Shown in pieces: positions 36,629 to 50,219 of a DNA stretch of 64,000 bases (positions are counted from its first letter, which is position 1; every line of letters begins with the position of its first letter). The DNA lies in sequence record NC_026927.1; one strand, given 5' to 3'. The notes below the pieces were generated by a model. The model ran no database searches. It worked only from the letters and a program-made list of their open reading frames with translations, and had not been told where the DNA came from. The position numbers and the translations under genes are program-made.

Positions 36629-36925
36629 ATGAAAGCCGACGCACAACTAGAACACCACGCCAATTGCTGGAATGCTATTCGAAATAATGATAAGGAATAC
36701 TTTAAGATAGGAGTTGGTGTTTATAAAACTATCAACGCTGATAGGGAATACTATATCAATAGTCGTATTGAAACTGATAAGAATAGTGATATATCGGAGA
36801 TGGATCAAGTGAAAGAAGCCCACTCCAAACACTTAAGTTATTTTATTGGATACAAATCAGAAGTAACAGTTGAAGCTATCAGTAGTGATTGGAAATCTAC
36901 CCTATACCGGGTTACTACCTGCTAG
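36629..36925 (+). CDS. hypothetical protein
   Basis: [14 protein letters not shown]...; start moved to ATG 36629. Confidence 0.6.
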
Positions 36926-36957
36926 GGTGTGTTATAATAGATGAAATGCATGTTGTG

Positions 36958-37956
36958 ATGAAAGCTTTAATCTCTGGTATAACTGGGCAGGATGGATCCT
37001 ATCTTGCTGAACTTCTACTGAAGAAGGGGTATGAAGTCCATGGTATTATTCGTAGAACCTCCTCGTTTAATACAGGAAGAATCGATCATATCTTCGATCA
37101 GTTACACCTCCACTACGGGGATTTGACTGACTCCCTGAACATAGTCTCTATCATTAAGGAAGTAGAACCTGATGAGATCTACAACCTAGGGGCACAGAGT
37201 CATGTGAAAGTATCTTTCGAGGAACCTGAATATACAGCACAGACTGATGCTCTGGGAACCCTAAGAGTATTGGAGGCAGTTCGTCTCCTAGGTATGACAG
37301 ATAGGGTCCGTATCTACCAGGCATCCACCAGTGAGTTGTATGGGTTGGTACAAGAGACACCACAGAAAGAAACAACACCTTTCTACCCACGATCTCCATA
37401 TGGCGTAGCTAAACTCTATGGATATTGGATTGTAAAGAACTACAGAGAGAGTTATGGGATGCACGCCAGTAGTGGTATTCTATTCAACCATGAGTCACCA
37501 CGACGGGGTGAGACTTTCGTAACCCGTAAGATTACTAGGGGACTATCCCGTATTAGTACAGGACTACAGGATTGTCTATACCTAGGTAATCTAAACTCAA
37601 GACGAGATTGGGGTCATGCTGAAGACTATGTGGAGGCTATGTGGTTGATGTTACAACAGGAAACTCCTGATGACTATGTGATTGCCACAGGTAAAGAGTA
37701 TTCAGTGAAGGACTTTGTAGAGGCATCTGCTGAATACTTTGGTATGAAGATTGAGTGGCAGGGTGAAGGATTGGATGAAGTGGGTATAGATAGATTTACA
37801 AAGAAGGTTGTCGTTCGTGTGAGTGACAAATACTTCAGACCAGCAGAGGTTGAAACTCTCTGGGGTGATCCCACTAAGGCTAAAGAGGTATTGGGTTGGA
37901 AACCTAAGCATACCTTTGCTTCCCTAGTAGAAGATATGTGTATCTACGGTCAGTAA
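36958..37956 (+). CDS. gmd: GDP-mannose 4,6-dehydratase
   Basis: [60 protein letters not shown]; start moved to ATG 36958. Confidence 0.97.
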
Positions 37957-37958
37957 TT

Positions 37959-38885
37959 ATGGAAAAAGGTGCAACGGTAGCAGTATTTGGTTCGGGTGGA
38001 TTGGCTGGAAGTGCCATCACCAGGGCACTCAGGTGTTCTTTTGGGGGGTATAAGATTCTTACTCCTAGGAGTAAAGAACTAGACCTAAGAGAACAAGCAG
38101 ATGTTCGTAGTTGGTTTAAGCATAACAAAGTTGATTATGTATTCTTAGCTGCTGCTTTAGTTGGTGGTATCATGGCTAACAAGACTAGAAAGGCAGAGTT
38201 CTTACATGACAATCTAATGATGCAGTGTAATGTAATTGACTCTGCATACTATAGTGGAGTGAAGAAACTTCTATTCCTAGGTACTTCTTGTATCTATCCA
38301 GCAGGAAGGCACCATCCACTAGTGGAACATGAACTACTCACAGGACTATTAGAACCAACCAATGACGCATACGCAATCGCAAAGATCGCAGGGATCAAAC
38401 AATGTGACTTCTACCGAGAACAATATGGATTTGATGCTATCTCTATCATGCCTCCTAATCTATATGGTCCTGGAGATAATTTCAATGAGGGATCAGGACA
38501 TGTCCTCGCCTCATTGATGAATAGGTTTCACCTAGCGAAGGAAGCAGGTGCATCTAGAGTTGAATGTTGGGGTGATGGGACACCTATGAGGGAGTTCCTA
38601 TATGTGGATGACTTAGCAGATGCTTCCTTATACTTTATGGATAGTTATAGTGAGTCTGGGCACATTAATACTGGGACTGGTAGGGATGTAACTATCAAAC
38701 AACTAGCGGAGACTATTGCTGATGTAGTTGGATACAAAGGTGAGATAGGTTGGGATACAACTAAACCCAACGGAAACCCAAGGAAACTACTTGACAGCAG
38801 TAGGGCAAACCTGTTAGGATGGGAACCCAAGGTTAAATTTGAAGACGGAATCAAACTCACATACAACTGGTATCTAGCACAATGA
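37959..38885 (+). CDS. fcl: GDP-4-keto-6-deoxy-sugar epimerase/reductase (Fcl/WcaG or ColC type)
   Basis: AALVGGI.AN, FLGTSCIYP, LEPTN..YAIAK, PPNLYGP.DNF, HV, WGDG.P.REFL.VDD. Confidence 0.92.
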   Translation: MEKGATVAVFGSGGLAGSAITRALRCSFGGYKILTPRSKELDLREQADVRSWFKHNKVDYVFLAAALVGGIMANKTRKAEFLHDNLMMQCNVIDSAYYSGVKKLLFLGTSCIYPAGRHHPLVEHELLTGLLEPTNDAYAIAKIAGIKQCDFYREQYGFDAISIMPPNLYGPGDNFNEGSGHVLASLMNRFHLAKEAGASRVECWGDGTPMREFLYVDDLADASLYFMDSYSESGHINTGTGRDVTIKQLAETIADVVGYKGEIGWDTTKPNGNPRKLLDSSRANLLGWEPKVKFEDGIKLTYNWYLAQ

Positions 38886-40075
38886 CAAAGATTACAAATG
38901 GATATACGTGGCCTCTTATGAAGGACACTGTGACCAAGAGAGATAGGTTGAGGATGGCAAAGTTTATCCTCACCAGTGATAGACTAACACAAGGTAAAGA
39001 AGTTCGTAAGTTTGAGGAGCAGTGGAGTGAGTGGCTTGGAGTTAAACATTCTCTTTTTGTTAGCAGTGGCAGTACCGCTAACCTACTTCTTGTGTCTGCT
39101 TGGAAGGAATTATACGAGATCCCAGACCAGTCGAAAGTAATTGTACCTGCTTGTACTTGGGTAACTAATGTTGCTCCTATCATTCAGTGTGGTTTGACTC
39201 CAATCTTTTGTGACATCAACTTAGAAGACTACTCCTTTGATCTGGATAAACTACAGGATATTCGTGATGAATATCACGATGACATCAGAGGTATCTTTGT
39301 TACTCACCTCCTAGGATTTCCTGCTAATGTGGAAAAGTTTCGTGATGTTTTCCCCGACGCTCATATTCTAGAAGATGTATGTGAGAGTCACGGAGCAGTC
39401 CTCCCTAGTGGTGATAAGGCGGGAACCTTTGATGTTGGTGGCACATTTAGTTTCTACTTTGGGCACCACATGACTACCATTGAAGGTGGTATGGTGAGTA
39501 CTAATGATCCAGAACTCTATGATCTAATGAGAATGAAGCGTTCTCATGGGTTAGCGAGAGAATCACTATACTTTGAAACATACAAAGAGAAGTATCCTGA
39601 TGTAAATCCACAGTTTCTCTTCGTTACTGAGGGATATAACTTCCGTAATACTGATCTAGCTGCTGTATTAGGACAGTCTCAACTGAAGAGACTAGACAGT
39701 ATGATTGGGATTCGTAACAGGAACTATGAGTTATACCAACAATTACTAAAGAAACACGAACATGACCTTACACATGAGTATGGTGGTTCTTTCTATATCC
39801 CCTCCACACAGGGGGATGTAAGTAGTTTCTGTTTTCCATTTGTAGTTGATAATATGCACTGCTATCTTAAGTTAAAAGAACTTCTAGAAGAATACTATGT
39901 TGAGTATCGACCTATTGTGAGTGGTAACCTCCTACGACAACCATTCTTGAGAGAATATTCTGCTGAGTGTCCCAAGGCAGATATAGCCCATGAAAAGGGA
40001 CTATATATTGGGAATAATCACTTTGTAGATGAGTCTAACTTTCACATGCTAGATGAGATTTTGAGCCAACTTTGA
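38882..40075 (+). CDS. PLP-dependent DegT-family enzyme, ColD-type GDP-4-keto-6-deoxymannose 3-dehydratase candidate
   Basis: VSSGSTANLL, EDVCESHGA, TFSFYFGHHMTTIEGG (His at the usual Schiff-base Lys), GYNFR. Confidence 0.8.
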   Translation: MTKITNGYTWPLMKDTVTKRDRLRMAKFILTSDRLTQGKEVRKFEEQWSEWLGVKHSLFVSSGSTANLLLVSAWKELYEIPDQSKVIVPACTWVTNVAPIIQCGLTPIFCDINLEDYSFDLDKLQDIRDEYHDDIRGIFVTHLLGFPANVEKFRDVFPDAHILEDVCESHGAVLPSGDKAGTFDVGGTFSFYFGHHMTTIEGGMVSTNDPELYDLMRMKRSHGLARESLYFETYKEKYPDVNPQFLFVTEGYNFRNTDLAAVLGQSQLKRLDSMIGIRNRNYELYQQLLKKHEHDLTHEYGGSFYIPSTQGDVSSFCFPFVVDNMHCYLKLKELLEEYYVEYRPIVSGNLLRQPFLREYSAECPKADIAHEKGLYIGNNHFVDESNFHMLDEILSQL

Positions 40076-40076
40076 T

Positions 40077-40871
40077 ATGACATTTTCATTTAATCATATG
40101 GGCAACTTGGGGCATCTGGGAAACCAGATGTTTCAGTATGCCGCACTCATTGGTATGGGGGCTAAGCATGGGAGGAGTATTTGTATCCCCCATAAACAAA
40201 GTTTTGGGCAATCATACTACCAGGATCTTCGTAGTAATATCTACGATGCTTTCAACCTCTCACCCAATGGTGTAGGTATCAGTAGGTTCCCCACAGTTCA
40301 GGAAGGTAGTTTCCACTTTGATGAAAACTTATTTGAGAACCCACCAGAGGAGAACTGTAACCTCTATGGATTCTTCCAGAGTGAAAAGTGGTTCTCACAT
40401 ATCAAAGAAGGTATTAAGAAAGAGTTCACTCTAAAGGATGAATACCGGGAAGTGGCACAACTGATGAGAGAACAACTCTCTGGTCAGGTTGTTGCTATTC
40501 ATGTTCGTAGAACTGACTACCTATCCAATCCAAACCACGGAGCATTGGGTTTAGATTACTATGAGAAGGCACTGGAGTTGGTTCCTAATAACCTTACAGT
40601 AGTTGTATTCACTGATGATCCAGAGTGGGCTAAAGAACAACCACTCTTTCCAGATGATAGGTTCTTTGTATCAGAGACAGACTGTCCCTATACAGACCTT
40701 GCTCTTATGAGTATGTGTGATTATCATATTATTGCCAACAGTTCATACTCTTGGTGGGGTGCATACTTATCTGATAGTAAGAAAGTAATTGCTCCTAAAC
40801 AGTGGTTTGGGGAACCACTTAAAACAAATAACCTGAAAGATCTTTATTGTGATGGGTGGGTGAAACTATGA
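40077..40871 (+). CDS. GT11-family glycosyltransferase (alpha-1,2-fucosyl/colitosyltransferase-like)
   Basis: GHLGNQMFQYA, GFFQSEKWF, IHVRRTDY, DYYEKA, VFTDD, IIANSSYSWWGAYL. Confidence 0.92.
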   Translation: MTFSFNHMGNLGHLGNQMFQYAALIGMGAKHGRSICIPHKQSFGQSYYQDLRSNIYDAFNLSPNGVGISRFPTVQEGSFHFDENLFENPPEENCNLYGFFQSEKWFSHIKEGIKKEFTLKDEYREVAQLMREQLSGQVVAIHVRRTDYLSNPNHGALGLDYYEKALELVPNNLTVVVFTDDPEWAKEQPLFPDDRFFVSETDCPYTDLALMSMCDYHIIANSSYSWWGAYLSDSKKVIAPKQWFGEPLKTNNLKDLYCDGWVKL

Positions 40872-41491
40872 GTAACTTTGCAAGTGCTAAACAGTTTATC
40901 AAGAATGGTATTGATACACAACAGGAGTCTATCTCTGGTGGTGGCAGCACTATGGCTTCCACAGTTGCCTTCAGATACTTCCTACCAAAGTATATCAAAC
41001 AGTATGGTATTGAGAGTATCTTAGACATTGGGTGTGGTGACTGGCATTGGATGTCTACTATCAGAGAAGAGTTTCCTGATGTAGACTATGAGGGATGGGA
41101 TGCCTCTGAGGATATGATTAATCCCATGACTGAGAAGTATGGAACAGAGAATACCAGGTTTGAGGTAAAGGATATCATTGATAACAAGTATCCCAAAGTG
41201 GATTTGGTTATCGCTCGTGATGTTCTATTCCACCTCAAAGAAGATTACCTAAAGAAGGTTCTCAAGAATATCAGTAAGGCAGGTGTGAAGTATCTACTAG
41301 CAACTACCTTCCCAGGTTTACCTAAGAACGAAGAACTCACTCCTAAGAAATATGACGGTTGGGGATTCAGACCAATCAATCTGGATATCGAGCCTTATAA
41401 TATGAAAGATTATTGTATCAATGATTTCAAGGAAACCACAGCCCCCAACAGGGGGTATCATCGTCATGTGTATTTGTATGAGGTAAAATGA
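40868..41491 (+). CDS. class I SAM-dependent methyltransferase
   Basis: ILDIGCGD, YEGWD, DLVIARDVLFHL. Confidence 0.85.
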   Translation: MSNFASAKQFIKNGIDTQQESISGGGSTMASTVAFRYFLPKYIKQYGIESILDIGCGDWHWMSTIREEFPDVDYEGWDASEDMINPMTEKYGTENTRFEVKDIIDNKYPKVDLVIARDVLFHLKEDYLKKVLKNISKAGVKYLLATTFPGLPKNEELTPKKYDGWGFRPINLDIEPYNMKDYCINDFKETTAPNRGYHRHVYLYEVK

Positions 41492-41640
41492 AGATCGAAA
41501 TTGAACTCTCTAAAGATGTAGAATACAAAGGAGAGAAACTAGGTGAGTATATCTGGAACCTAGAAGAGGGAATTAATCATGTTACTGGCTTTGGTGATTC
41601 ACTTGAGGAATGTTTTAAGGAAATTGTGAGGTTTAGATGA
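41488..41640 (+). CDS. small hypothetical protein (50 aa)
   Basis: ATGA overlaps at both ends, GAGG SD. Confidence 0.55.
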   Translation: MKIEIELSKDVEYKGEKLGEYIWNLEEGINHVTGFGDSLEECFKEIVRFR

Positions 41641-42368
41641 AGAAAGTAGCTATTATTTTTATTGGAACAGGTAGATACCTAGAGTTTCTACCAAAGTATT
41701 ATGAACAGGCAGAAGCAAACCTCTTCCCTGACAGACCCAAACACTACTATGTGTTTACTGATGGTGACTTAGGTAATGAACTACCTGACAATGTAACTGT
41801 ATACGAACAGGAACATCTCCAATGGCCATACATCACCCTCTATCGTTTCGGTATTATCCAGAAACACCTAGAGGAGATTGAGAAGGAGTGTGGTTTCCTA
41901 CTCTTTATGGATGCTGATACACAGGTAGTATCCCCTGTATCGTTCGATGAAGTATTCAAGAAGGGAAAACCCTATACAGGTGTTCATCACCCCTGCCACG
42001 CCCTGAATATGCCACCACACAATGAGTTTCCTGGTAGTCTAGAAACTAATACAGCATCCAAGGCAGCATGTAAACCTGGTGATGACTTCTCTGTATATTG
42101 GCAAGGTTGTGTATGGGGTGGAAACATCAAGGGTGCTCGTAAGATTATTGATACTCTCCACCACAGAACTAAACAAGATGAGGAGAATGGAATCATTGCT
42201 AAGTGGCATGATGAAAGTCATATCAATAGATACTTCCTTGACAACAAAGATAAGGTGAATACCCTATCACCTAGTTTCGCATACCCAGAGTCCTTCACTG
42301 AGTATATGGAAGACTACGAACCTAAGATTGTACACCTAGCAAAAGAGAATTCTAAGTATCAGGTATGA
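41637..42368 (+). CDS. GT6-family glycosyltransferase (ABO/alpha-1,3-Gal(NAc) transferase-like)
   Basis: IFIGTGRYLEF, YYVFTD, FMDAD (DXD), YWQGCVWGG, WHDESHINRY. Confidence 0.9.
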   Translation: MKKVAIIFIGTGRYLEFLPKYYEQAEANLFPDRPKHYYVFTDGDLGNELPDNVTVYEQEHLQWPYITLYRFGIIQKHLEEIEKECGFLLFMDADTQVVSPVSFDEVFKKGKPYTGVHHPCHALNMPPHNEFPGSLETNTASKAACKPGDDFSVYWQGCVWGGNIKGARKIIDTLHHRTKQDEENGIIAKWHDESHINRYFLDNKDKVNTLSPSFAYPESFTEYMEDYEPKIVHLAKENSKYQV

Positions 42369-42988
42369 GTTACTTCACAGATTATGACAACGAATTCACA
42401 GTATTCGAGGCACCAAAGAACGGGGGAACTACTCTCCGTCTTTGGATATACTACGCAGGAACAGGGGAGTTGGTGAAGTCAGCGGAGTCTGAATACTACG
42501 CTGGCACTGGAGAAACATACAAACAACTCCAAGAGTGGGGTTATGTGAATGGGGAATACGAGAACCCCAAGACCCAGATGGTATGTATCAAGAGAGACCC
42601 TGTAGATAGGTTTGTAAGTGCCTTCTATGATAAGGTAATCAAAGAGGGGAGAATCAAAGTAACCATCGATGAGTTTCTCTCAAACTATGAAGAGATACTT
42701 GATAAGTCTACCCTCAAGATGAATGATGGTAAGACTAACTTCATGAAGTTTCACTTTGAGTCACAGACATATCACTTCGGTAAAGATAAAGATCTATATC
42801 ATAAGGTCTTTGATATCTCAGAGGTTGGTACTGGTCTGAAGAAGTATCTGGAGGGTAAGTGGAATATAGAACTACCTGATGTCCATGCTAGAAATAGTGG
42901 TGGTGGTCGGAAGTTTGATCTCTCCAGGGGACAACTGAATAAGGTGAAGGAAATCTACACACAGGACTATTATAATGGCTGGTACTGA
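42365..42988 (+). CDS. sulfotransferase (Sulfotransfer_2-like)
   Basis: 5'-PSB-like APKNGGTTL and 3'-PB-like RDPVDRFVSAF; H...Q. Confidence 0.75.
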   Translation: MSYFTDYDNEFTVFEAPKNGGTTLRLWIYYAGTGELVKSAESEYYAGTGETYKQLQEWGYVNGEYENPKTQMVCIKRDPVDRFVSAFYDKVIKEGRIKVTIDEFLSNYEEILDKSTLKMNDGKTNFMKFHFESQTYHFGKDKDLYHKVFDISEVGTGLKKYLEGKWNIELPDVHARNSGGGRKFDLSRGQLNKVKEIYTQDYYNGWY

Positions 42989-43760
42989 AGGATATATCCT
43001 GATAGGTATTGGTGATAGGTATCTACAGATGACAGAGAACCTCACTAAAACTCTAAAGAAACATGGAGATAATAGAGGATCCCTAACTATCACAAGATCG
43101 GATAATAGGGAACTCTATAGTGAGTGTAACACTGAGTTTGAGAGGAATGGAACTCTACCTAAGATTACCTTAGATAGATACTTACCTTTTGATCACAATA
43201 TATTCCTAGATGCTGATATGTTATGTGTAGGTGATACACAACATGTATGGGATCTATTCAGGAGTAGTGATCAGTTTGTTCAACAGGTAGGATGTTTGGG
43301 AAGAGATCCTAACTTCCACGCTCACCAGTATGAGAGTGAGTTGGGTTTTGAGATTCCTAGAGTCCATGGTGGTTGTATCTACATCAATAGAGAGAAACTA
43401 GACCCAGGGTTCTTTCCCTATATGAGAGAGTGTTTCCTAAACTATAAACAAATATTTCATAATAGTGGTCTAACCTATAAGAATAGTAGACCAGATCAAC
43501 CACTATACGCTCTAGCAAATGGTATGTGGGGATTCAAACCTGTGGATCTATACACTAACCCTATCATGACTATTGTGAATGATAGCACCCCACCCCCACT
43601 AGATAGTGTGTTCTTCAATAAGAAGAGGGGTCCTAAGTTAGATACTCCTGTTCCCTTTGTTCATGTATTCCGTGGAGAAGAGGGTATGTCTAGGGGTTAT
43701 ACTAGAGGTGACCAGAAGATGTTGTTGTCCCATTATGATTACTACCTGAACTATGAATAA
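42975..43760 (+). CDS. GT-A fold glycosyltransferase-like protein (GT8-like)
   Basis: PKI.LD, IFLDADML, GG...IN, DQP. Confidence 0.6.
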   Translation: MAGTEGYILIGIGDRYLQMTENLTKTLKKHGDNRGSLTITRSDNRELYSECNTEFERNGTLPKITLDRYLPFDHNIFLDADMLCVGDTQHVWDLFRSSDQFVQQVGCLGRDPNFHAHQYESELGFEIPRVHGGCIYINREKLDPGFFPYMRECFLNYKQIFHNSGLTYKNSRPDQPLYALANGMWGFKPVDLYTNPIMTIVNDSTPPPLDSVFFNKKRGPKLDTPVPFVHVFRGEEGMSRGYTRGDQKMLLSHYDYYLNYE

Positions 43761-44541
43761 AACTATATGGATGTGTTGGTTCCAGGGTTGGGATAAGGCA
43801 CCAGAGATTACAGAGAAGTGTTTAGAGTCCTGGAAACACTACAATAGTGATTGGGATATTGTTCTACTAGATGAATCCAACTACAAGGATTACATCTCCA
43901 TTGATAAAGAACTACCAGGACTGAAGACAAACTATATCTCACTGGGTGATATCCTTCGTCTCTTTCTACTAAAAGAGCATGGTGGAGTATGGGCAGATGC
44001 AACTATCTTCTGCAACAAACCAGTGGATTGGGTTTTGGATTATGAGGATTCTTTCATCTTCACCAGGAAGGATAAGATGATTGCCTCTTGGTTTGTTGCT
44101 GCTCAGAAAGATTCCCATGTTGTAGATGTATGGTATAATAAGATGTTAGAGTTCTGGAAGTATCGTATGGAAAATACAGATACTTTCGAGCAACAATATG
44201 GTTGGATACACGCTTTGTTCCGTCAGTCCTACGCTCAGGATAATGGGTTCAGGGATATTGTAGATAGTATGGATAAGATTGATTGCATGAGTGATGGTCA
44301 ATCTAGAGGTAAGGGTCCGCACTTCTTTGCACCCTACAGTAAATACTTCTACAACCCTATCAGTGACACGATAAAGAATCGTATAGACTCTAAAGTTGAT
44401 CCACTATATAAGTTGTCTTACAAGGCAAACACAGACTGGAGAAGTCCAGAGAACAGGGGTATCCACCCAGCAGACCAAAAGATTATGTTGGAATATCCAA
44501 CTAATAGTGAACTACATTATCTACTCAACACATTAAAATGA
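43753..44541 (+). CDS. capsular polysaccharide synthesis / GT32-like DXD glycosyltransferase
   Basis: IWMCWFQG..KAP...CLESW, DILRL.LL..HGGVWADAT. Confidence 0.85.
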   Translation: MNKTIWMCWFQGWDKAPEITEKCLESWKHYNSDWDIVLLDESNYKDYISIDKELPGLKTNYISLGDILRLFLLKEHGGVWADATIFCNKPVDWVLDYEDSFIFTRKDKMIASWFVAAQKDSHVVDVWYNKMLEFWKYRMENTDTFEQQYGWIHALFRQSYAQDNGFRDIVDSMDKIDCMSDGQSRGKGPHFFAPYSKYFYNPISDTIKNRIDSKVDPLYKLSYKANTDWRSPENRGIHPADQKIMLEYPTNSELHYLLNTLK

Positions 44542-45443
44542 CAAATAAATCATTGGTTACCGGTGGCGCGGGTTTCATCGGGTCACATATTGTGGACCGA
44601 CTTATTACACTAGGACATCAAGTCGTAGTGATTGACAATGAATCCTCTGATGGTCATGATGAATACCATTGGAACAGAAGCGGACAAGTACAAAACCATA
44701 AGGCAGACATTCGTGACTACGATGCAATCAAACACTTGTTTGGTGGAGTCAATAATGTTTTTCACCTTGCCGCTAAAGCATCAGTACAGGCGTCAGTAGA
44801 TAACCCCCTACCAACTATTGCCACACAGGTAATGGGAACCGCCAATGTATTGGAGGCAGCACGACAATCTGGTGTGAGTAAGTTTGTATATTCCTCTACT
44901 AGTGCTTGTTATGGTAACAACAACCCCATTCCTAATGTAGAAACGATGAGAGAAGATCCTCTCAACGCCTATGCTATTGGTAAGTTATCTGGGGAACAAC
45001 TAGTTCGTGCCTATCACTACCTCTATGGTATGAAGACGGTGGCATTCCGTTATACCAATGTATATGGGGAGAGGGCAAGACATGTAGGACACTATGCTCC
45101 TGCTGTTAGTAAGTTCCTAAAGATGAGAGCACAGGGAGAACCTCTAACTATCTTTGGTGATGGTGCCCAACGCCGAGACTTTATTCATGTATCTGATGTA
45201 GTCAACGCTAACTGCTGTATTACCTATGAGGAACTAGAGCAGTGGGGTGAGACCTACAACATTGGTTATGGTAAGAACTGGAGTATCCAAGAGATTGCAG
45301 ACTCTATCAGTCAGGAACAGATTCACCTATCTGCTCGTACTGGTGAGATGCGTGAGACGCTTGCTGATATTGGGAAGGCAAAGGCAGAGTTGATGTGGAA
45401 ACCAAAGACTGACATCATGGATTGGATTAGGGTACAACTCTGA
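44538..45443 (+). CDS. NAD-dependent nucleotide-sugar epimerase/dehydratase
   Basis: LVTGGAGFIGSH, FHLAA, YSSTS, YAIGK, RYTNVYG, GDGAQRRDFIHV. Confidence 0.92.
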   Translation: MTNKSLVTGGAGFIGSHIVDRLITLGHQVVVIDNESSDGHDEYHWNRSGQVQNHKADIRDYDAIKHLFGGVNNVFHLAAKASVQASVDNPLPTIATQVMGTANVLEAARQSGVSKFVYSSTSACYGNNNPIPNVETMREDPLNAYAIGKLSGEQLVRAYHYLYGMKTVAFRYTNVYGERARHVGHYAPAVSKFLKMRAQGEPLTIFGDGAQRRDFIHVSDVVNANCCITYEELEQWGETYNIGYGKNWSIQEIADSISQEQIHLSARTGEMRETLADIGKAKAELMWKPKTDIMDWIRVQL

Positions 45444-46060
45444 TGCCAGTATTCCAGAAGGACAACAAGAAAGTTCTATTCATCCATGTTCCCAAGACTG
45501 CGGGGAGTTCTGTGAATAAACTCTTTGTGAATAATGGATATGAAATGTCCTACTATTCTGAGAGTTCTAAAGATCTATACAATGGATTATGTGGACCACA
45601 ACATCTGGACTCACTTCTATTGGAAGATGAGTTCCAAGATTTCTCTCAGTTTGATTATATCTTCTCTATCTTCAGAGACCCAGTAGACAGACATCTATCT
45701 GAGTTCACCTGGGCACCCTGGGGACTAATGGGTAGAAACATCTACACACCAGAAAGATTTGATGAGTGGTGTCCTAAGATATTCAGGGCGTATCAGGACT
45801 CACCATATAGGATGGATAACCACATTAGACCTCAACATGAGTTCTATGTGGATGGATGTGATGTGTATGACTATGAGAATATCGATACACTCACAGAGAA
45901 ACTATGTGATAAAATAGGTCTAGATAATAAAGAGATGCCATATGAAAGGTCTTCACGATATGATAGTGAGGATTATGTCATCTATGAAGATACTTACGAT
46001 TGTATCACTGAATTTTACAAAGGAGACTATCAATGGCAAAAGGATTCAGTCCTGTTGTGA
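45443..46060 (+). CDS. sulfotransferase (Sulfotransfer_2-like)
   Basis: FIHVPKTAGSSV, FRDPVDRHLSEF, HIRPQHEF. Confidence 0.85.
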   Translation: MPVFQKDNKKVLFIHVPKTAGSSVNKLFVNNGYEMSYYSESSKDLYNGLCGPQHLDSLLLEDEFQDFSQFDYIFSIFRDPVDRHLSEFTWAPWGLMGRNIYTPERFDEWCPKIFRAYQDSPYRMDNHIRPQHEFYVDGCDVYDYENIDTLTEKLCDKIGLDNKEMPYERSSRYDSEDYVIYEDTYDCITEFYKGDYQWQKDSVLL

Positions 46061-46911
46061 CTAAGGATAAGAACAAGTCCCAGTTCAAACTACAGGGTGT
46101 TCCTAGGATTTACTACATCAGTTTAGATGATCATGCTCATCGTCAAGACTATATGGAGTCCCAGTTTGAAGACTGGGGCATCACTAACTTCGAAAGAATC
46201 TCTGCTCATGATGGTAGAGGTGATAATGATCTGAGTGATATTCTCAAAGGATCTTATCCAAAGATGATGAGTTCTGGTGAGGTTGGTTGTGTAACCTCTC
46301 ACCTAAAGGCACTAAAACACTGGTTAGATACTACAGAGGGTGAAGAGTTTCTCCTTATGATGGAGGATGATTGTGATATCTCCACTGCTTCCCACTGGGG
46401 GTTCTCCTGGAGAGAGTTTGTTGGGAATATTCCATCCCATGTAGATTGTGTTCAGTTAGCAGTTATCAACCCATCAGAACTACATATCAAACTCCATATC
46501 AGGTTTGTGAATGATTTCTCCACTGCCTCATACCTAATCCGTAGATCACACGCAGAGAAGTTAGTTAGACTCTATTGTAGGGGTGATAAGTATAAACTTG
46601 ATAGTGATATCAAACCCAGAGCAGTTGCTGATGATCTTATCTACAACTCTGGTGTGACTCTTGCTATGCCTCTATTTGCCTTCAAGATTGCACTAGGTTC
46701 CAGTATCCATGATGTCCATATCAATACCTTCCACAAGAGTAGTCATGATGGTATCTGGGAGTTTTGGAAGAAAACAGCACCAACTATTGAGAACTGGAAA
46801 CCATTCTTCAACTATGATGCCTATCTGGGAACCCTACCACCCAATGTTGTGGTTCAACAATGGCAGCAAAAACAGGAATCCAAAGCAAAAGATTCAGGGG
46901 CTTCGCAATAG
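46033..46911 (+). CDS. GT25-family glycosyltransferase
   Basis: YYISLD...R..YM, FERISAHDG, GEVGCVTSHL, MEDD. Confidence 0.85.
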   Translation: MAKGFSPVVTKDKNKSQFKLQGVPRIYYISLDDHAHRQDYMESQFEDWGITNFERISAHDGRGDNDLSDILKGSYPKMMSSGEVGCVTSHLKALKHWLDTTEGEEFLLMMEDDCDISTASHWGFSWREFVGNIPSHVDCVQLAVINPSELHIKLHIRFVNDFSTASYLIRRSHAEKLVRLYCRGDKYKLDSDIKPRAVADDLIYNSGVTLAMPLFAFKIALGSSIHDVHINTFHKSSHDGIWEFWKKTAPTIENWKPFFNYDAYLGTLPPNVVVQQWQQKQESKAKDSGASQ

Positions 46912-47729: not shown

Positions 47730-47736
47730 TATTAGA

Positions 47737-47763
47737 AGGAGGGTTTGATACCCTCCTTTTTTT
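47737..47763 (+). terminator. intrinsic terminator
   Basis: AGGAGGGT-TTGAT-ACCCTCCT then T-run. Confidence 0.8.
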
Positions 47764-47810: not shown

Positions 47811-50219
47811 ATGGCATTTAAGATTAATGGCGTAGTACGCATTGATAATAGTGGCAACGGTTTTCTGGGAATTGTAACCGCTACCGACGCTAATATCACA
47901 GGAGTTCTCACTGCCACTGAGGTGGATGCGAAAGTATCATCTAAGGCAATAACTGAACAAACAGATGGAACCGTAGATGATGTAACTGGTGCAGATGAAC
48001 TATTACTATTAGATGCCGAGACTGGTGGATTACTAAGAGTATCAATAGATGAGTTCGTGCAGGGTTCAGGCATTGGAACTCTAGTAACGGACTTTGATAA
48101 CTTAACTGTTACTGGTATCACAACCGTTGCCACCCTCAAAGGTATTGGATCTAGTAATATCAGTGTAGGAAGTTCACTTTCCTTTGCTGATGGTACAGAG
48201 ATCATCATGGGTGACTCTGGTGACTTCAGTATTCATCATGATGGTGATCATACTTACCTAGATGAGACGGGGCAGGGTAATCTAAAACTCCGTACAAATA
48301 ACTTTAGAGTAACAAATATAGCAGAAACAAAACCAGCTATTACAGCACAGGTTACTTCTGGTGTTGAGTTGTATTTTGATGGTAATAAGAAGATAGAAAC
48401 TACAAATACTGGTGTTCTTGTGAGTGGTATGCTCACTGCTGATAGATTAAGATCAGGTGATATTGCTGCTAGAAATGTAATCACACTGGGCATTACCACT
48501 ATTCAAGATCACCTAGAGGTGAATGATAGTACTGGTTCTGGTACCGAATACAATCTCAATGTTAAGACCAATGGTAGTTCTACCTTTGGTGTCTTAGGTA
48601 ATGGAAATATTCTACTTGGAAACAGTTCCGGTGCTCCATTCATGGCGACGAATGATCACCACGCAACTTCCAAGAAGTATGTGGATGATGCTATTGATGA
48701 TTCCGTCAGCTACATCGGCGCTAGTGCTTGGGGTAGTGTTGCTGCTGATGGATCACTTCGGAATGGACTAAACTGCACAACTTCACAAACAAGTGGAGGG
48801 GTTTATCAAGTCACGTTCACAACTCCTCTTCCTAATGCAAACTATGCTATCACTGGAGCATCTAGTGATAGTGCTTTCTGGGTAAAAGATGGTTCAGAAA
48901 CAGTCAATGGATTTACAGTTTATATAGTTGATGTAGATGGAAATTCAATAAATAGAGATTTATCCTTCGCCGTCTTCAGTGCCAACGCCATCGTGCCGCC
49001 GTCAGGCGTAGGCGCTGACGCCTGGGGAACATTCTCTGGAACGACTGGCGACCTGCAAGCTGGGATGAATATCAGCTCAACTACACGTACTGCCCTAGGA
49101 GAATATGACGTAGAATTTATAACCGAGATGCCTTCGGACTCAGAATATGCCGTAACCGCAGTATCTAATGCAAGTCAAGCAAAGTTTATTAATATACGCA
49201 ATAAGTCTACAAGTGGTTTTAAGGTTGTAACTAGAGATGGTTCTGGAAATATTTCTGACGGAGCCGTATCCTTTGCCGTCCACGCATCATCAACAGTCAC
49301 GCCAACCTATACCTGGACACGCGACGGCACAACGCTGAAGACTGCTAATGATGGTGATGATGTAGAGGTGAACGGTCGGGGCCTTTTCGAAAGCAGCGAG
49401 CCGGCTGACTATGTTGTGAGAGTAAAAAACACCGACACAGGTACTATCAATCCCGCATGTTTGCTGCTGGACATGCGAGATGTTGACGCTTCTAATAATT
49501 ATTCAGCCTTAAGGGTAGTAGGTTACAACACTACAACAGGTCTTGATATAAATTCAGACGGCGCTATCACGGCTCAGGGGCAGATAACCGCAAACGTCAG
49601 TAACCAAGGCGGAGAGAATAGTGCAATCAAGGCAATTCAAACCAACTCCAACGGGTATGCGGTATGGGTTGGTGATGGACCTAACTCTACAGATAGAACC
49701 GCTTCTATAGGCCCTGATGGAAGAGCCACGTTTTCCTCCGGCAAAATTTCGCTGGGTCCGACCGGCTCGGGGACGTTTGCAGACAATAACATCTTCCTGC
49801 AGTCGGACGGACAAGTCAGATGCACGAACGTAATTACATCTTCAGCTTTGGCAGGCTCAGGCACCAGACCATTATATGTCGACTCATCTGGTGGTTTAAC
49901 TATCAGCTCTTCTGATCGTAGTTTGAAGACGAACATCACTACTCTTCCTGATCAGATACAAGTAGTCAAAGCATTAAATCCCGTTTCGTTTAATTGGATA
50001 GAGAAAGAAAGACTAGGTGCAGGTCTTGAAATTGGATTTATTGCTCAAGAAGTAGAAGAAATCGTTCCTGAGGTTGTTCGTAGCACTGCCGGAATACTTT
50101 CAGTAGATTATGCAAAATTAACCGCAACTTTAACGTCTGCCCTACAGGCAGCACTCACCCGCATCGAAGCCCTCGAAGCGAAAGTCCAATCACTCGAAGA
50201 AGGTGTGACACCTGACTAA
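47811..50219 (+). CDS. tail fibre-like protein with C-terminal intramolecular chaperone (peptidase S74-like)
   Basis: GITT/GIVT fibre motifs; two AW G.. domains; C-terminal SSDRSLKTNI...GFIAQEVE..VPE...VDY..L. Confidence 0.85.
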   Translation: MAFKINGVVRIDNSGNGFLGIVTATDANITGVLTATEVDAKVSSKAITEQTDGTVDDVTGADELLLLDAETGGLLRVSIDEFVQGSGIGTLVTDFDNLTVTGITTVATLKGIGSSNISVGSSLSFADGTEIIMGDSGDFSIHHDGDHTYLDETGQGNLKLRTNNFRVTNIAETKPAITAQVTSGVELYFDGNKKIETTNTGVLVSGMLTADRLRSGDIAARNVITLGITTIQDHLEVNDSTGSGTEYNLNVKTNGSSTFGVLGNGNILLGNSSGAPFMATNDHHATSKKYVDDAIDDSVSYIGASAWGSVAADGSLRNGLNCTTSQTSGGVYQVTFTTPLPNANYAITGASSDSAFWVKDGSETVNGFTVYIVDVDGNSINRDLSFAVFSANAIVPPSGVGADAWGTFSGTTGDLQAGMNISSTTRTALGEYDVEFITEMPSDSEYAVTAVSNASQAKFINIRNKSTSGFKVVTRDGSGNISDGAVSFAVHASSTVTPTYTWTRDGTTLKTANDGDDVEVNGRGLFESSEPADYVVRVKNTDTGTINPACLLLDMRDVDASNNYSALRVVGYNTTTGLDINSDGAITAQGQITANVSNQGGENSAIKAIQTNSNGYAVWVGDGPNSTDRTASIGPDGRATFSSGKISLGPTGSGTFADNNIFLQSDGQVRCTNVITSSALAGSGTRPLYVDSSGGLTISSSDRSLKTNITTLPDQIQVVKALNPVSFNWIEKERLGAGLEIGFIAQEVEEIVPEVVRSTAGILSVDYAKLTATLTSALQAALTRIEALEAKVQSLEEGVTPD

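Follow-up and report, generated by a model that had tools for sequence, protein, structure and literature searches.

Gene islands annotated as "LPS" (lipopolysaccharide) clusters have been recorded in cyanophages since 2005, and to our knowledge the product is known for none of them. Such cyanophage glycan islands are usually read as means of receptor masking or host surface modification. Here, we analyzed a 64,000-nucleotide stretch of sequence record NC_026927.1 (the window; positions are those of the window, and the record coordinate is the window coordinate plus 124000), in which a glycosyltransferase family 11 (GT11) gene and a family 6 (GT6) gene, the latter from the family of the human ABO transferases, lie in one glycan island of Synechococcus phage ACG-2014f (KJ019059/NC_026927.1, Kyanoviridae). 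The kind of system is known, as cyanophage glycan islands, prokaryotic antigen mimicry by GT6 with GT11, and cyanophage GT6 enzymes with a DXD motif have all been described. What is new is how strongly and how asymmetrically GT11 and GT6 are linked in viruses, fusions included; a separate GT6 clade marked by a QGC donor motif and a His gate, together with a predicted A-type versus B-type split among cyanophages; and the lineage-specific addition of ColD, sulfotransferase, GT8-like, and GT32 genes. We see an even chance that GT11 and GT6 build a blood-group-B-like branch on a host acceptor, likely rough LPS, and so change the surface of the infected cell.

Among the described systems, the "LPS" cluster of Prochlorococcus phage P-SSM2 with its GT6 (PSSM2_268) occupies a syntenic place ahead of hli, ferredoxin, a fiber gene, and psbA, and shares the backbone order GMD (GDP-mannose 4,6-dehydratase), Fcl, ..., GT11, ..., methyltransferase, GT6, ..., short-chain dehydrogenase/reductase (SDR; 50% identical), and GT25 (60% identical), its GT6 being likewise of the minimal DXD type. 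Unlike the window, it lacks ColD, sulfotransferases, GT8-like, and GT32 genes, its methyltransferase has no detectable homology to that of the window, and its GT6, only 30% identical, belongs to another clade with an AGG (A-type) motif and an Ala gate. Like the window GT6, PaGT6 of Parachlamydia acanthamoebae is confined to a minimal catalytic domain carrying DXD; it depends on Mg or Mn, uses H-type acceptors (2'-fucosyllactose and H trisaccharide) but not LacNAc, and transfers GalNAc. It differs in this donor and in the AGG motif and Ala gate of the Parachlamydiaceae sequences, which group with P-SSM2. In Escherichia coli O86 (GT6 WbnI plus GT11) and in the system of BoGT6a from Bacteroides ovatus, GT6-GT11 pairs make A/B antigen mimics (PMC5377540, PMC3516806); both GT6 enzymes are of the metal-independent NXN type, unlike the window GT6, and BoGT6a, although its acceptor contacts are kept in the phage protein, also carries a C-terminal membrane-binding domain. 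Moreover, the mimics of the E. coli O86 type are encoded within cellular O-antigen clusters, whereas Wzx-, Wzy-, and ligase-type domains were not found in the phage genome. The "cell wall modification" genes of cyanophage S-SCSM1 (GMD, Fcl, and an alpha-1,2-fucosyltransferase) are of the same class and have been read as host surface modification, but GT6, ColD, and sulfotransferases are not named in that description. Finally, the colitose pathway of E. coli O55, like the window, combines GMD, a ColD whose Lys is replaced by His, a reductase of the ColC/Fcl type, and an adjoining GT11; in O55 no GT6 follows, and the phage Fcl-like enzyme could make GDP-fucose too. WbgN of E. coli O55 is a GT11 colitosyltransferase.

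The island of ACG-2014f occupies 36.9 to 46.9 kb on the + strand, with the genes in the order of Table 1, and the query 36889-46911 is 100% identical to the phage record; the other listed ACG-2014f isolates are 97.9 to 99.7% identical over it, and 45 records span most of its length. It comprises five glycosyltransferases (GT11, GT6, GT8-like, GT32, and GT25), one methyltransferase, and two sulfotransferases in addition to the nucleotide-sugar genes, and is flanked by standard cyanomyovirus genes (peptide deformylase, hli, ferredoxin, tail fiber, psbA, and psbD). The original prediction had placed GT11, GT6, and an extended-SDR epimerase in one operon and had named a ColD-type gene. Profile and PDB matches confirmed these genes at their places, in agreement with the RefSeq annotation, and RefSeq gene calls agree with the window open reading frames (ORFs) in general. 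All island genes are intact and codirectional, their stops and starts overlap or abut, and no convincing terminator-like site was found on the + strand before 47734. The first one downstream of the island is a strong terminator-like hairpin (11 pairs, then a T run) at 47734-47760, between hli and the tail-fiber gene. A scan for sigma-70-like promoters returned sites no commoner than in shuffles, so operon boundaries are not claimed from it. G+C content is even (0.40 to 0.42) over the island and its flanks, and composition therefore gives no hint of recent import.

The genes are under purifying selection: against a strain at dS of ∼0.2, dN/dS was 0.05 for GT11 and 0.08 for GT6, and the values ranged from 0.05 to 0.13. 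Given these values and frames that are intact in 45 isolates, the notion that the genes are pseudogenes or hitchhikers was rejected. In addition, most of 40.2 to 45.4 kb is covered at 90 to 99% identity by short contigs that come from three studies and four marine RNA libraries, which is compatible with transcription of the stretch in the sea; this evidence consists of assembled contigs, with no information on strand, level, or timing.

To describe the GT6 surroundings, loci from 7 GenBank cyanophages and 36 IMG/VR contigs were compared, and near-identical loci were collapsed into 30 GT6-seeded lineages, whose GT6 proteins are as little as ∼30% identical. GT11 abutted GT6 directly in 16 of the 30, usually with overlapping stop and start, and lay at most 6 kb away in 8 more (24 of 30 within 6 kb); in the remaining 6 it was not detected. 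Searching from the other side, with the window GT11, gave 79 viral loci, of which 16 had GT6 within 6 kb and 63 had GT25. Because GT6 occurs in so few GT11 loci and GT25 in so many, while GT11 is near GT6 in most GT6 lineages, GT6 appears to be an optional step after GT11, behaving as an add-on to a widespread GT25-plus-GT11 pair in the manner of ABO acting on H. Fusions occur in both orders: GT11-GT6 in P0134 (554 amino acids; L124:6001-7665), on an ENA contig beside GT_PLOD, GT92-like, and GT2 genes, and GT6-GT11 in a 1,114-amino-acid ORF on a contig of a giant-virus metagenome-assembled genome (MAG; L035:4231-7572). In bacterial loci with NXN/MGG-type GT6, GT11 was adjacent in 14 of 19, a pairing that fits the known A/B-mimicking clusters.

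GT6 domains are elsewhere fused to GT2, GT4, GT31, GT32, and GT17 partners, and in one protein (P0141) to a methyltransferase; in P-SSM2, too, a methyltransferase gene lies just ahead of GT6. Four metagenomic proteins (P0133, P0139, P0140, and P0144) carry a QGC-type GT6 fused to a PLOD-type glycosyltransferase, three of them with PqqD. PqqD is the peptide-recognition element of ribosomally synthesized and posttranslationally modified peptide pathways. These fusions hint that some members of the QGC clade may glycosylate peptides or proteins.

GT6 is assigned to its family by PF03414 (75.9 bits against a cutoff of 25). The closest solved relatives are BoGT6a, at E 1.7e-27, and, at E ∼1e-16, the ABO transferases of humans; a cutoff of E <= 0.001 gave matches to 72 PDB GT6 sequences, and the best 60 of the 72 were all GT6 chains. 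The NCBIfam model NF041524 ("family 6 glucosyltransferase") gave 174.6 bits and its cutoff of 250 was not reached. The motif FMDAD (D92-A-D94) falls in the same columns as DVD of ABO and NAN of BoGT6a, and the enzyme is thus predicted to be metal dependent (Mn/Mg), of the DXD rather than the NXN subgroup. That GT6 keeps DXD, as the original prediction had pointed out, is borne out by the alignment with ABO but is not new, since DXD in cyanophage GT6 was published for a clade typified by P-SSM2 and PaGT6 (Thiyagarajan et al. 2012). The catalytic Glu is retained in WHDES at 190-194 (E303 of GTA/GTB, E192 of BoGT6a), and K236 corresponds to BoGT6a K231 (K359 of alpha3GT) on a gapless extension of the alignment and is invariant in the clade.

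Residues of the substrate site suggest which sugars are joined. The contacts of BoGT6a with 2'-fucosyllactose are H122, G124, T134, Y153, W189, E192, and I228, and in alpha3GT, an enzyme that does not accept fucosylated substrates, H122, G124, and I228 are replaced by Gln, Trp, and Trp. In a HMMER alignment, the BoGT6a contacts map to H118, C120, S134, Y154, W190, E193, and H233 of the window GT6 (four identical, two conservative, and a His as the gate residue), with none of the alpha3GT-type Gln, Trp, or Trp at these positions, so that the acceptor site resembles those of fucose-accepting GT6 enzymes. At the positions of ABO codons 266 to 268, the window GT6 reads Q-G-C (Q156, G157, and C158); these residues, H233, and K236 are invariant among 23 clade members that are 30 to 51% identical to the window protein. 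QGC placed in the human A transferase abolished A activity and gave maximal B activity, while AGG or AAA gave pure A activity (Yamamoto et al.). Because of the QGC motif, we predict a B-type (Gal) transferase, carrying the code over from a distant scaffold.

The original prediction had left the donor at Gal or GalNAc, that is, A or B. A GalNAc-transferring GT6 like PaGT6 and BoGT6a, supplied with UDP-GalNAc by the SDR, would accord with PaGT6, besides which the literature searched names no assayed prokaryotic GT6 of the DXD type, and with WbpP and WbgU, both UDP-GlcNAc/GalNAc 4-epimerases, as the second and third solved relatives of the SDR. We nevertheless hold this to be very improbable: the PaGT6 and P-SSM2 types carry AGG, which specifies A, the code table lists no A activity for QGC, the motif of the window, and Gln and Cys at the donor positions are at least as large as Met and Ala of the human B transferase. 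The A or GalNAc part of the claim is thus disfavored, and the step from an H-type to an A/B-type structure, which is supported by the linkage, the fusions, and the acceptor residues, is narrowed to a predicted B-like product.

GT11 and GT6 could also decorate the same glycan with no A/B-type branch, GT6 acting on an unfucosylated acceptor or with a donor other than UDP-Gal. The window clade is uncharacterized and lies outside both the P-SSM2/PaGT6 and the NXN clades, its gate is an invariant His where known enzymes have Ala or Ile, and the GT2, GT4, GT31, GT32, and GT17 fusions show other partners for GT6 domains. Direct GT11 adjacency held across very divergent lineages, fusions in both orders, the acceptor contacts (A1, A2, and others) that match fucose-accepting enzymes, and the clean B activity of QGC on H substance in the human scaffold speak for the B-like branch, and we consider the alternative rather unlikely.

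A quick maximum-likelihood tree with SH-aLRT support was inferred from 106 viral and prokaryotic GT6 sequences (vertebrates left out, unrooted, and no transfer direction claimed). It contained a DXD/QGC/His group, in which the window fell together with scattered MAGs and the majority of Synechococcus myoviruses; a DXD/AGG-AAA-CGG/Ala group with P-SSM2 and the Parachlamydiaceae (support 93), whose sequences carry the AGG donor motif and an Ala gate; and the bacterial NXN sequences (support 99). The P-SSM2/Parachlamydiaceae group joined the NXN group (support 96), apart from the QGC/His group. The phylogeny, which the original prediction had proposed as a check, therefore places the window GT6 in a DXD clade, but not in that of P-SSM2 and PaGT6 described by Thiyagarajan et al. 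2012; as judged from these sequences, it is in a second, separate DXD clade with specificity residues of its own, which is undescribed in the open literature searched. In that literature, cyanophages and blood group together returned only two structure papers on BoGT6a and an unrelated review. Beside QGC/His, the viral motif classes are AGG with an Ala gate (P-SSM2 and several others) and AAA with an Ala gate. Close homologues of the window GT6 number in the hundreds in marine metagenomes, and among the nearest 150 cluster representatives at 50% identity, DXD was present in 101 and QGC in 78.

Two short contigs binned to a Chitinophagaceae MAG (L125) and a Thermoplasmatales MAG (L126) encode GT6 proteins 51 to 53% identical to that of the phage. 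These nest among cyanophage sequences in the tree, and the contigs are probably misbinned phage DNA.

More speculatively, and with clearly less than an even chance, marine cyanophages may show an ABO-like dimorphism, with either an A-type (AGG/AAA, Ala) or a B-type (QGC, His) GT6 at one syntenic site downstream of GT11, so that infection would stamp picocyanobacterial surfaces with histo-blood-group-like epitopes that are specific to the phage and govern superinfection and grazing, and QGC/His would be an unrecognized deep branch of the ABO family. In this reading, the A-type would be P-SSM2-like and the B-type that of ACG-2014f and most Synechococcus myoviruses, with a B-like branch possibly bearing colitose for fucose and capped by sulfate and methyl groups.

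The deoxyhexose would be supplied by the first three genes. GMD scored well above its equivalog cutoff (Table 1); its longest ORF begins at 36889, and the RefSeq start is 36958. The Fcl/ColC-like enzyme, at 420 bits, stays under the Fcl equivalog cutoff of 500 (NF047922), which fits either Fcl or ColC activity. The ColD-type call of the original prediction proved sound: the closest solved relative in a PDB sequence search is E. coli ColD (2gms, E 8e-51), the phage "GHH" aligns with "SHH" of ColD, and His188 is kept in place of the Schiff-base Lys, the PDB mutant entries H188N and H188K marking this column. A perosamine-type aminotransferase was rejected as a reading of this DegT-family gene, given the His at the Lys position and matches to perosamine synthases of only E 1e-25. 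The companion genes are thus present, with GMD (555 bits) upstream and the Fcl/ColC-like reductase beside it. GMD, a His-type ColD, and an Fcl/ColC-like reductase together form the GDP-L-colitose route, and without ColD the same pair leads to GDP-L-fucose. ColD accompanies GMD, Fcl, GT11, and GT6 in further viral lineages of both GT6 types (L011/L012, L033/L034, L048/L049, and L103). On this gene content, colitose is a real possibility as the sugar moved by GT11; the papers searched contained nothing on colitose in cyanophages. Between the window and strain L046, identity is only 82% in ColD, against 94 to 97% in its neighbors GMD, Fcl, GT11, and GT6, which suggests a recombination mosaic within the island.

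GT11 is a predicted alpha-1,2 deoxyhexosyltransferase acting on beta-Gal, judging from the PF01531 match (98.3 bits, cutoff 23.9; profile positions 106 to 296 of 298), the donor-binding motif HxRRxD (HVRRTDY at 142-148), and LGNQMFQYA at the N terminus. A sequence search of the PDB found no solved relative, giving only spurious tetratricopeptide-repeat matches to "YYEKALEL".

Taking these predictions together, GT25 or a host enzyme would supply a terminal beta-galactose, GT11 would form an alpha-1,2 linkage with either L-fucose or colitose, the 3-deoxy form of this sugar, and the Mn/Mg-dependent GT6 would then add alpha-1,3-galactose from UDP-Gal, provided by the SDR epimerase, to give a blood-group-B-like branched trisaccharide. 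The lineage-specific GT8-like, GT32, methyl-, and sulfo-transferring enzymes could add further decoration. These steps would take place on a host acceptor, probably the core of rough-type LPS or lipooligosaccharide (LOS), on the cytoplasmic side of the inner membrane; the host would export the product, and the altered surface of the infected cell might mask receptors from other phages.

The carrier is suggested by what the genome lacks and by the enzyme families. The complete 228-kb record gave no match to PF02397, PF00953, PF01943, or PF04932 (Bac_transf, WecA/MraY-type, Wzx-type, and Wzy_C/ligase), for which control genomes were positive, and since the phage is without such an initiating transferase, flippase, polymerase, or ligase, its enzymes most likely extend a host acceptor. 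Members of GT25, GT8, GT11, and GT6 extend LOS outer cores at the inner membrane face in Neisseria, Haemophilus, and Helicobacter. Host rough LPS is therefore the probable target, because the transferase families are of the LOS outer-core type and export and initiation genes are missing. By analogy with other cyanophage glycan islands, receptor masking is a likely role of the ACG-2014f island. The colitose analogue of the original prediction, the carrier molecule, and the biological role of the island product are all inferences from the sequence.

Alternatively, the same enzymes may glycosylate phage proteins in the cytoplasm (the downstream tail fiber, other virion proteins, or a phage-encoded pilin) rather than host LPS, yielding a glycan-coated virion or pilus. 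All island enzymes are predicted to be soluble or cytoplasmic, the phage has no lipid-carrier machinery, the tail-fiber gene (47811-50219) begins ∼0.9 kb downstream of the island, a pilin cassette is present in the phage genome, and some GT6 domains of the QGC type occur in fusion with PLOD-type protein glycosyltransferase domains and a PqqD peptide-recognition domain. However, neither an oligosaccharyltransferase nor a protein O- or N-glycosyltransferase was identified, the site beside hli, ferredoxin, the fiber gene, and psbA reflects a synteny of many cyanomyoviruses whose islands differ in content, and GT25, GT8, and GT11 are typical of LOS outer-core extension. Modification of phage proteins has a minor share of the probability, about that of the glycan without an A/B-type branch considered above.

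Several points weigh against a B-like branch on host LPS. The LPS target is deduced solely from the missing genes and the enzyme families present, and the sequence does not tell GDP-Fuc from GDP-colitose as the donor of GT11. In the window, the methyltransferase gene (and the 50-amino-acid ORF) separates GT11 from GT6, unlike in most relatives. At the gate, the window GT6 has His233 where the characterized fucose-accepting enzymes have Ala or Ile, and the QGC code was established in a human scaffold that is only ∼25 to 30% identical to the phage GT6. The QGC/His clade is known from sequences alone, so that donor, acceptor, carrier, and product are all predicted. Finally, the RNA-library contigs are strandless and could be DNA carryover.

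If the B-like branch on host LPS is correct, abundant ocean viruses write blood-group-like epitopes on the main marine primary producers, which would offer a way into superinfection exclusion and grazer recognition. It would also add a metal-dependent, B-type, minimal GT6 clade of relevance to the debate on whether the ABO family passed from prokaryotes to vertebrates. If it is wrong, the island would be one further uncharacterized glycan cassette.

Table 1. Features of the ACG-2014f glycan island, with the matches on which the predicted functions rest
Feature	Position	Strand	Evidence
GMD (GDP-mannose 4,6-dehydratase)	36970..37956	+	TIGR01472 555 bits (cutoff 415); PF16363 E 2e-152
Fcl/ColC-like reductase-epimerase (GDP-L-fucose/GDP-L-colitose synthase-like)	37959..38885	+	NF047922 420 bits; PF01370 E 2.6e-52
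ColD-type PLP/PMP-dependent GDP-4-keto-6-deoxymannose 3-dehydratase	38882..40075	+	PF01041 E 1.6e-59; ColD 2gms E 8e-51
GT11 alpha-1,2-fucosyl (or colitosyl) transferase-like enzyme	40077..40871	+	PF01531; HVRRTDY; phrog_2644; dN/dS 0.05
SAM-dependent methyltransferase	40868..41491	+	PF08242/PF13649 E 1e-10
50-amino-acid ORF	41488..41640	+	phrog_3687
GT6 retaining alpha-1,3-glycosyltransferase, minimal DXD type	41637..42368	+	PF03414; BoGT6a E 1.7e-27; motif mapping
Sulfotransferase-like protein 1	42365..42988	+	PF03567 E 1.3e-6; PKNGGTT and RDPVDR..S PAPS-binding motifs
GT8-like retaining GT-A glycosyltransferase (FLDAD), 261 amino acids	42975..43760	+	AlphaFold2 pLDDT 94; Foldseek
GT32-type glycosyltransferase (Caps_synth/DXD sugar-binding region)	43753..44541	+	PF05704 E 6.8e-41; PF04488 E 2.4e-8
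Short GalE-like extended SDR	44538..45443	+	PF01370 E 2e-62; 4zrm E 5.7e-50
Sulfotransferase-like protein 2	45443..46060	+	PF03567 E 1.1e-7; PKTAGSS and RDPVDR..S; phrog_3347 "galactose-3-O-sulfotransferase"
GT25 (LgtB/Lic2A-type beta-hexosyltransferase)	46033..46911	+	PF01755 E 2.5e-11

As to the other island genes, the SDR is probably a UDP-hexose 4-epimerase: among solved structures it is closest to 4zrm, the UDP-glucose 4-epimerase of Thermotoga, with WbpP and WbgU next (E 1e-43), and the GGAGFIGS and YAIGK motifs are present, while TIGR01179 gave 176 bits against the GalE equivalog cutoff of 262. GT25 is a candidate maker of the beta-Gal acceptor. The 261-amino-acid protein has a GT8-like fold in its AlphaFold2 model, for which Foldseek matched LARGE1, LgtC, GlyE, and glycogenin (E 4e-8 to 1e-6); it has no Pfam match of its own, and its homologue P0291 carries PF01501. 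Both sulfotransferase-like proteins have intact PKxGxT/S and RDPxxR..S motifs, and the methyltransferase is probably a glycan O-methylase. NCBIfam gave no matches for GT11, GT32, the 50-amino-acid ORF, or sulfotransferase 1. The methyltransferase, sulfotransferases, GT8-like, and GT32 genes are present in only 2 or 3 of ∼120 related viral loci and are therefore taken as specific to the ACG-2014f lineage.

The 50-amino-acid ORF is missing in some strains, GT11 and GT6 being 149 nucleotides closer in L046, and an RNA-library contig (run X18) joins 41487 to 41637 without it; from these sequences, its loss is a strain indel and not splicing. In addition, 60 to 80% of the words sampled from this marine cyanophage stretch are present in three runs labeled "peat metagenome" (X2, X3, and X11), an unexpected habitat that may reflect mislabeling or shared sequencing material.

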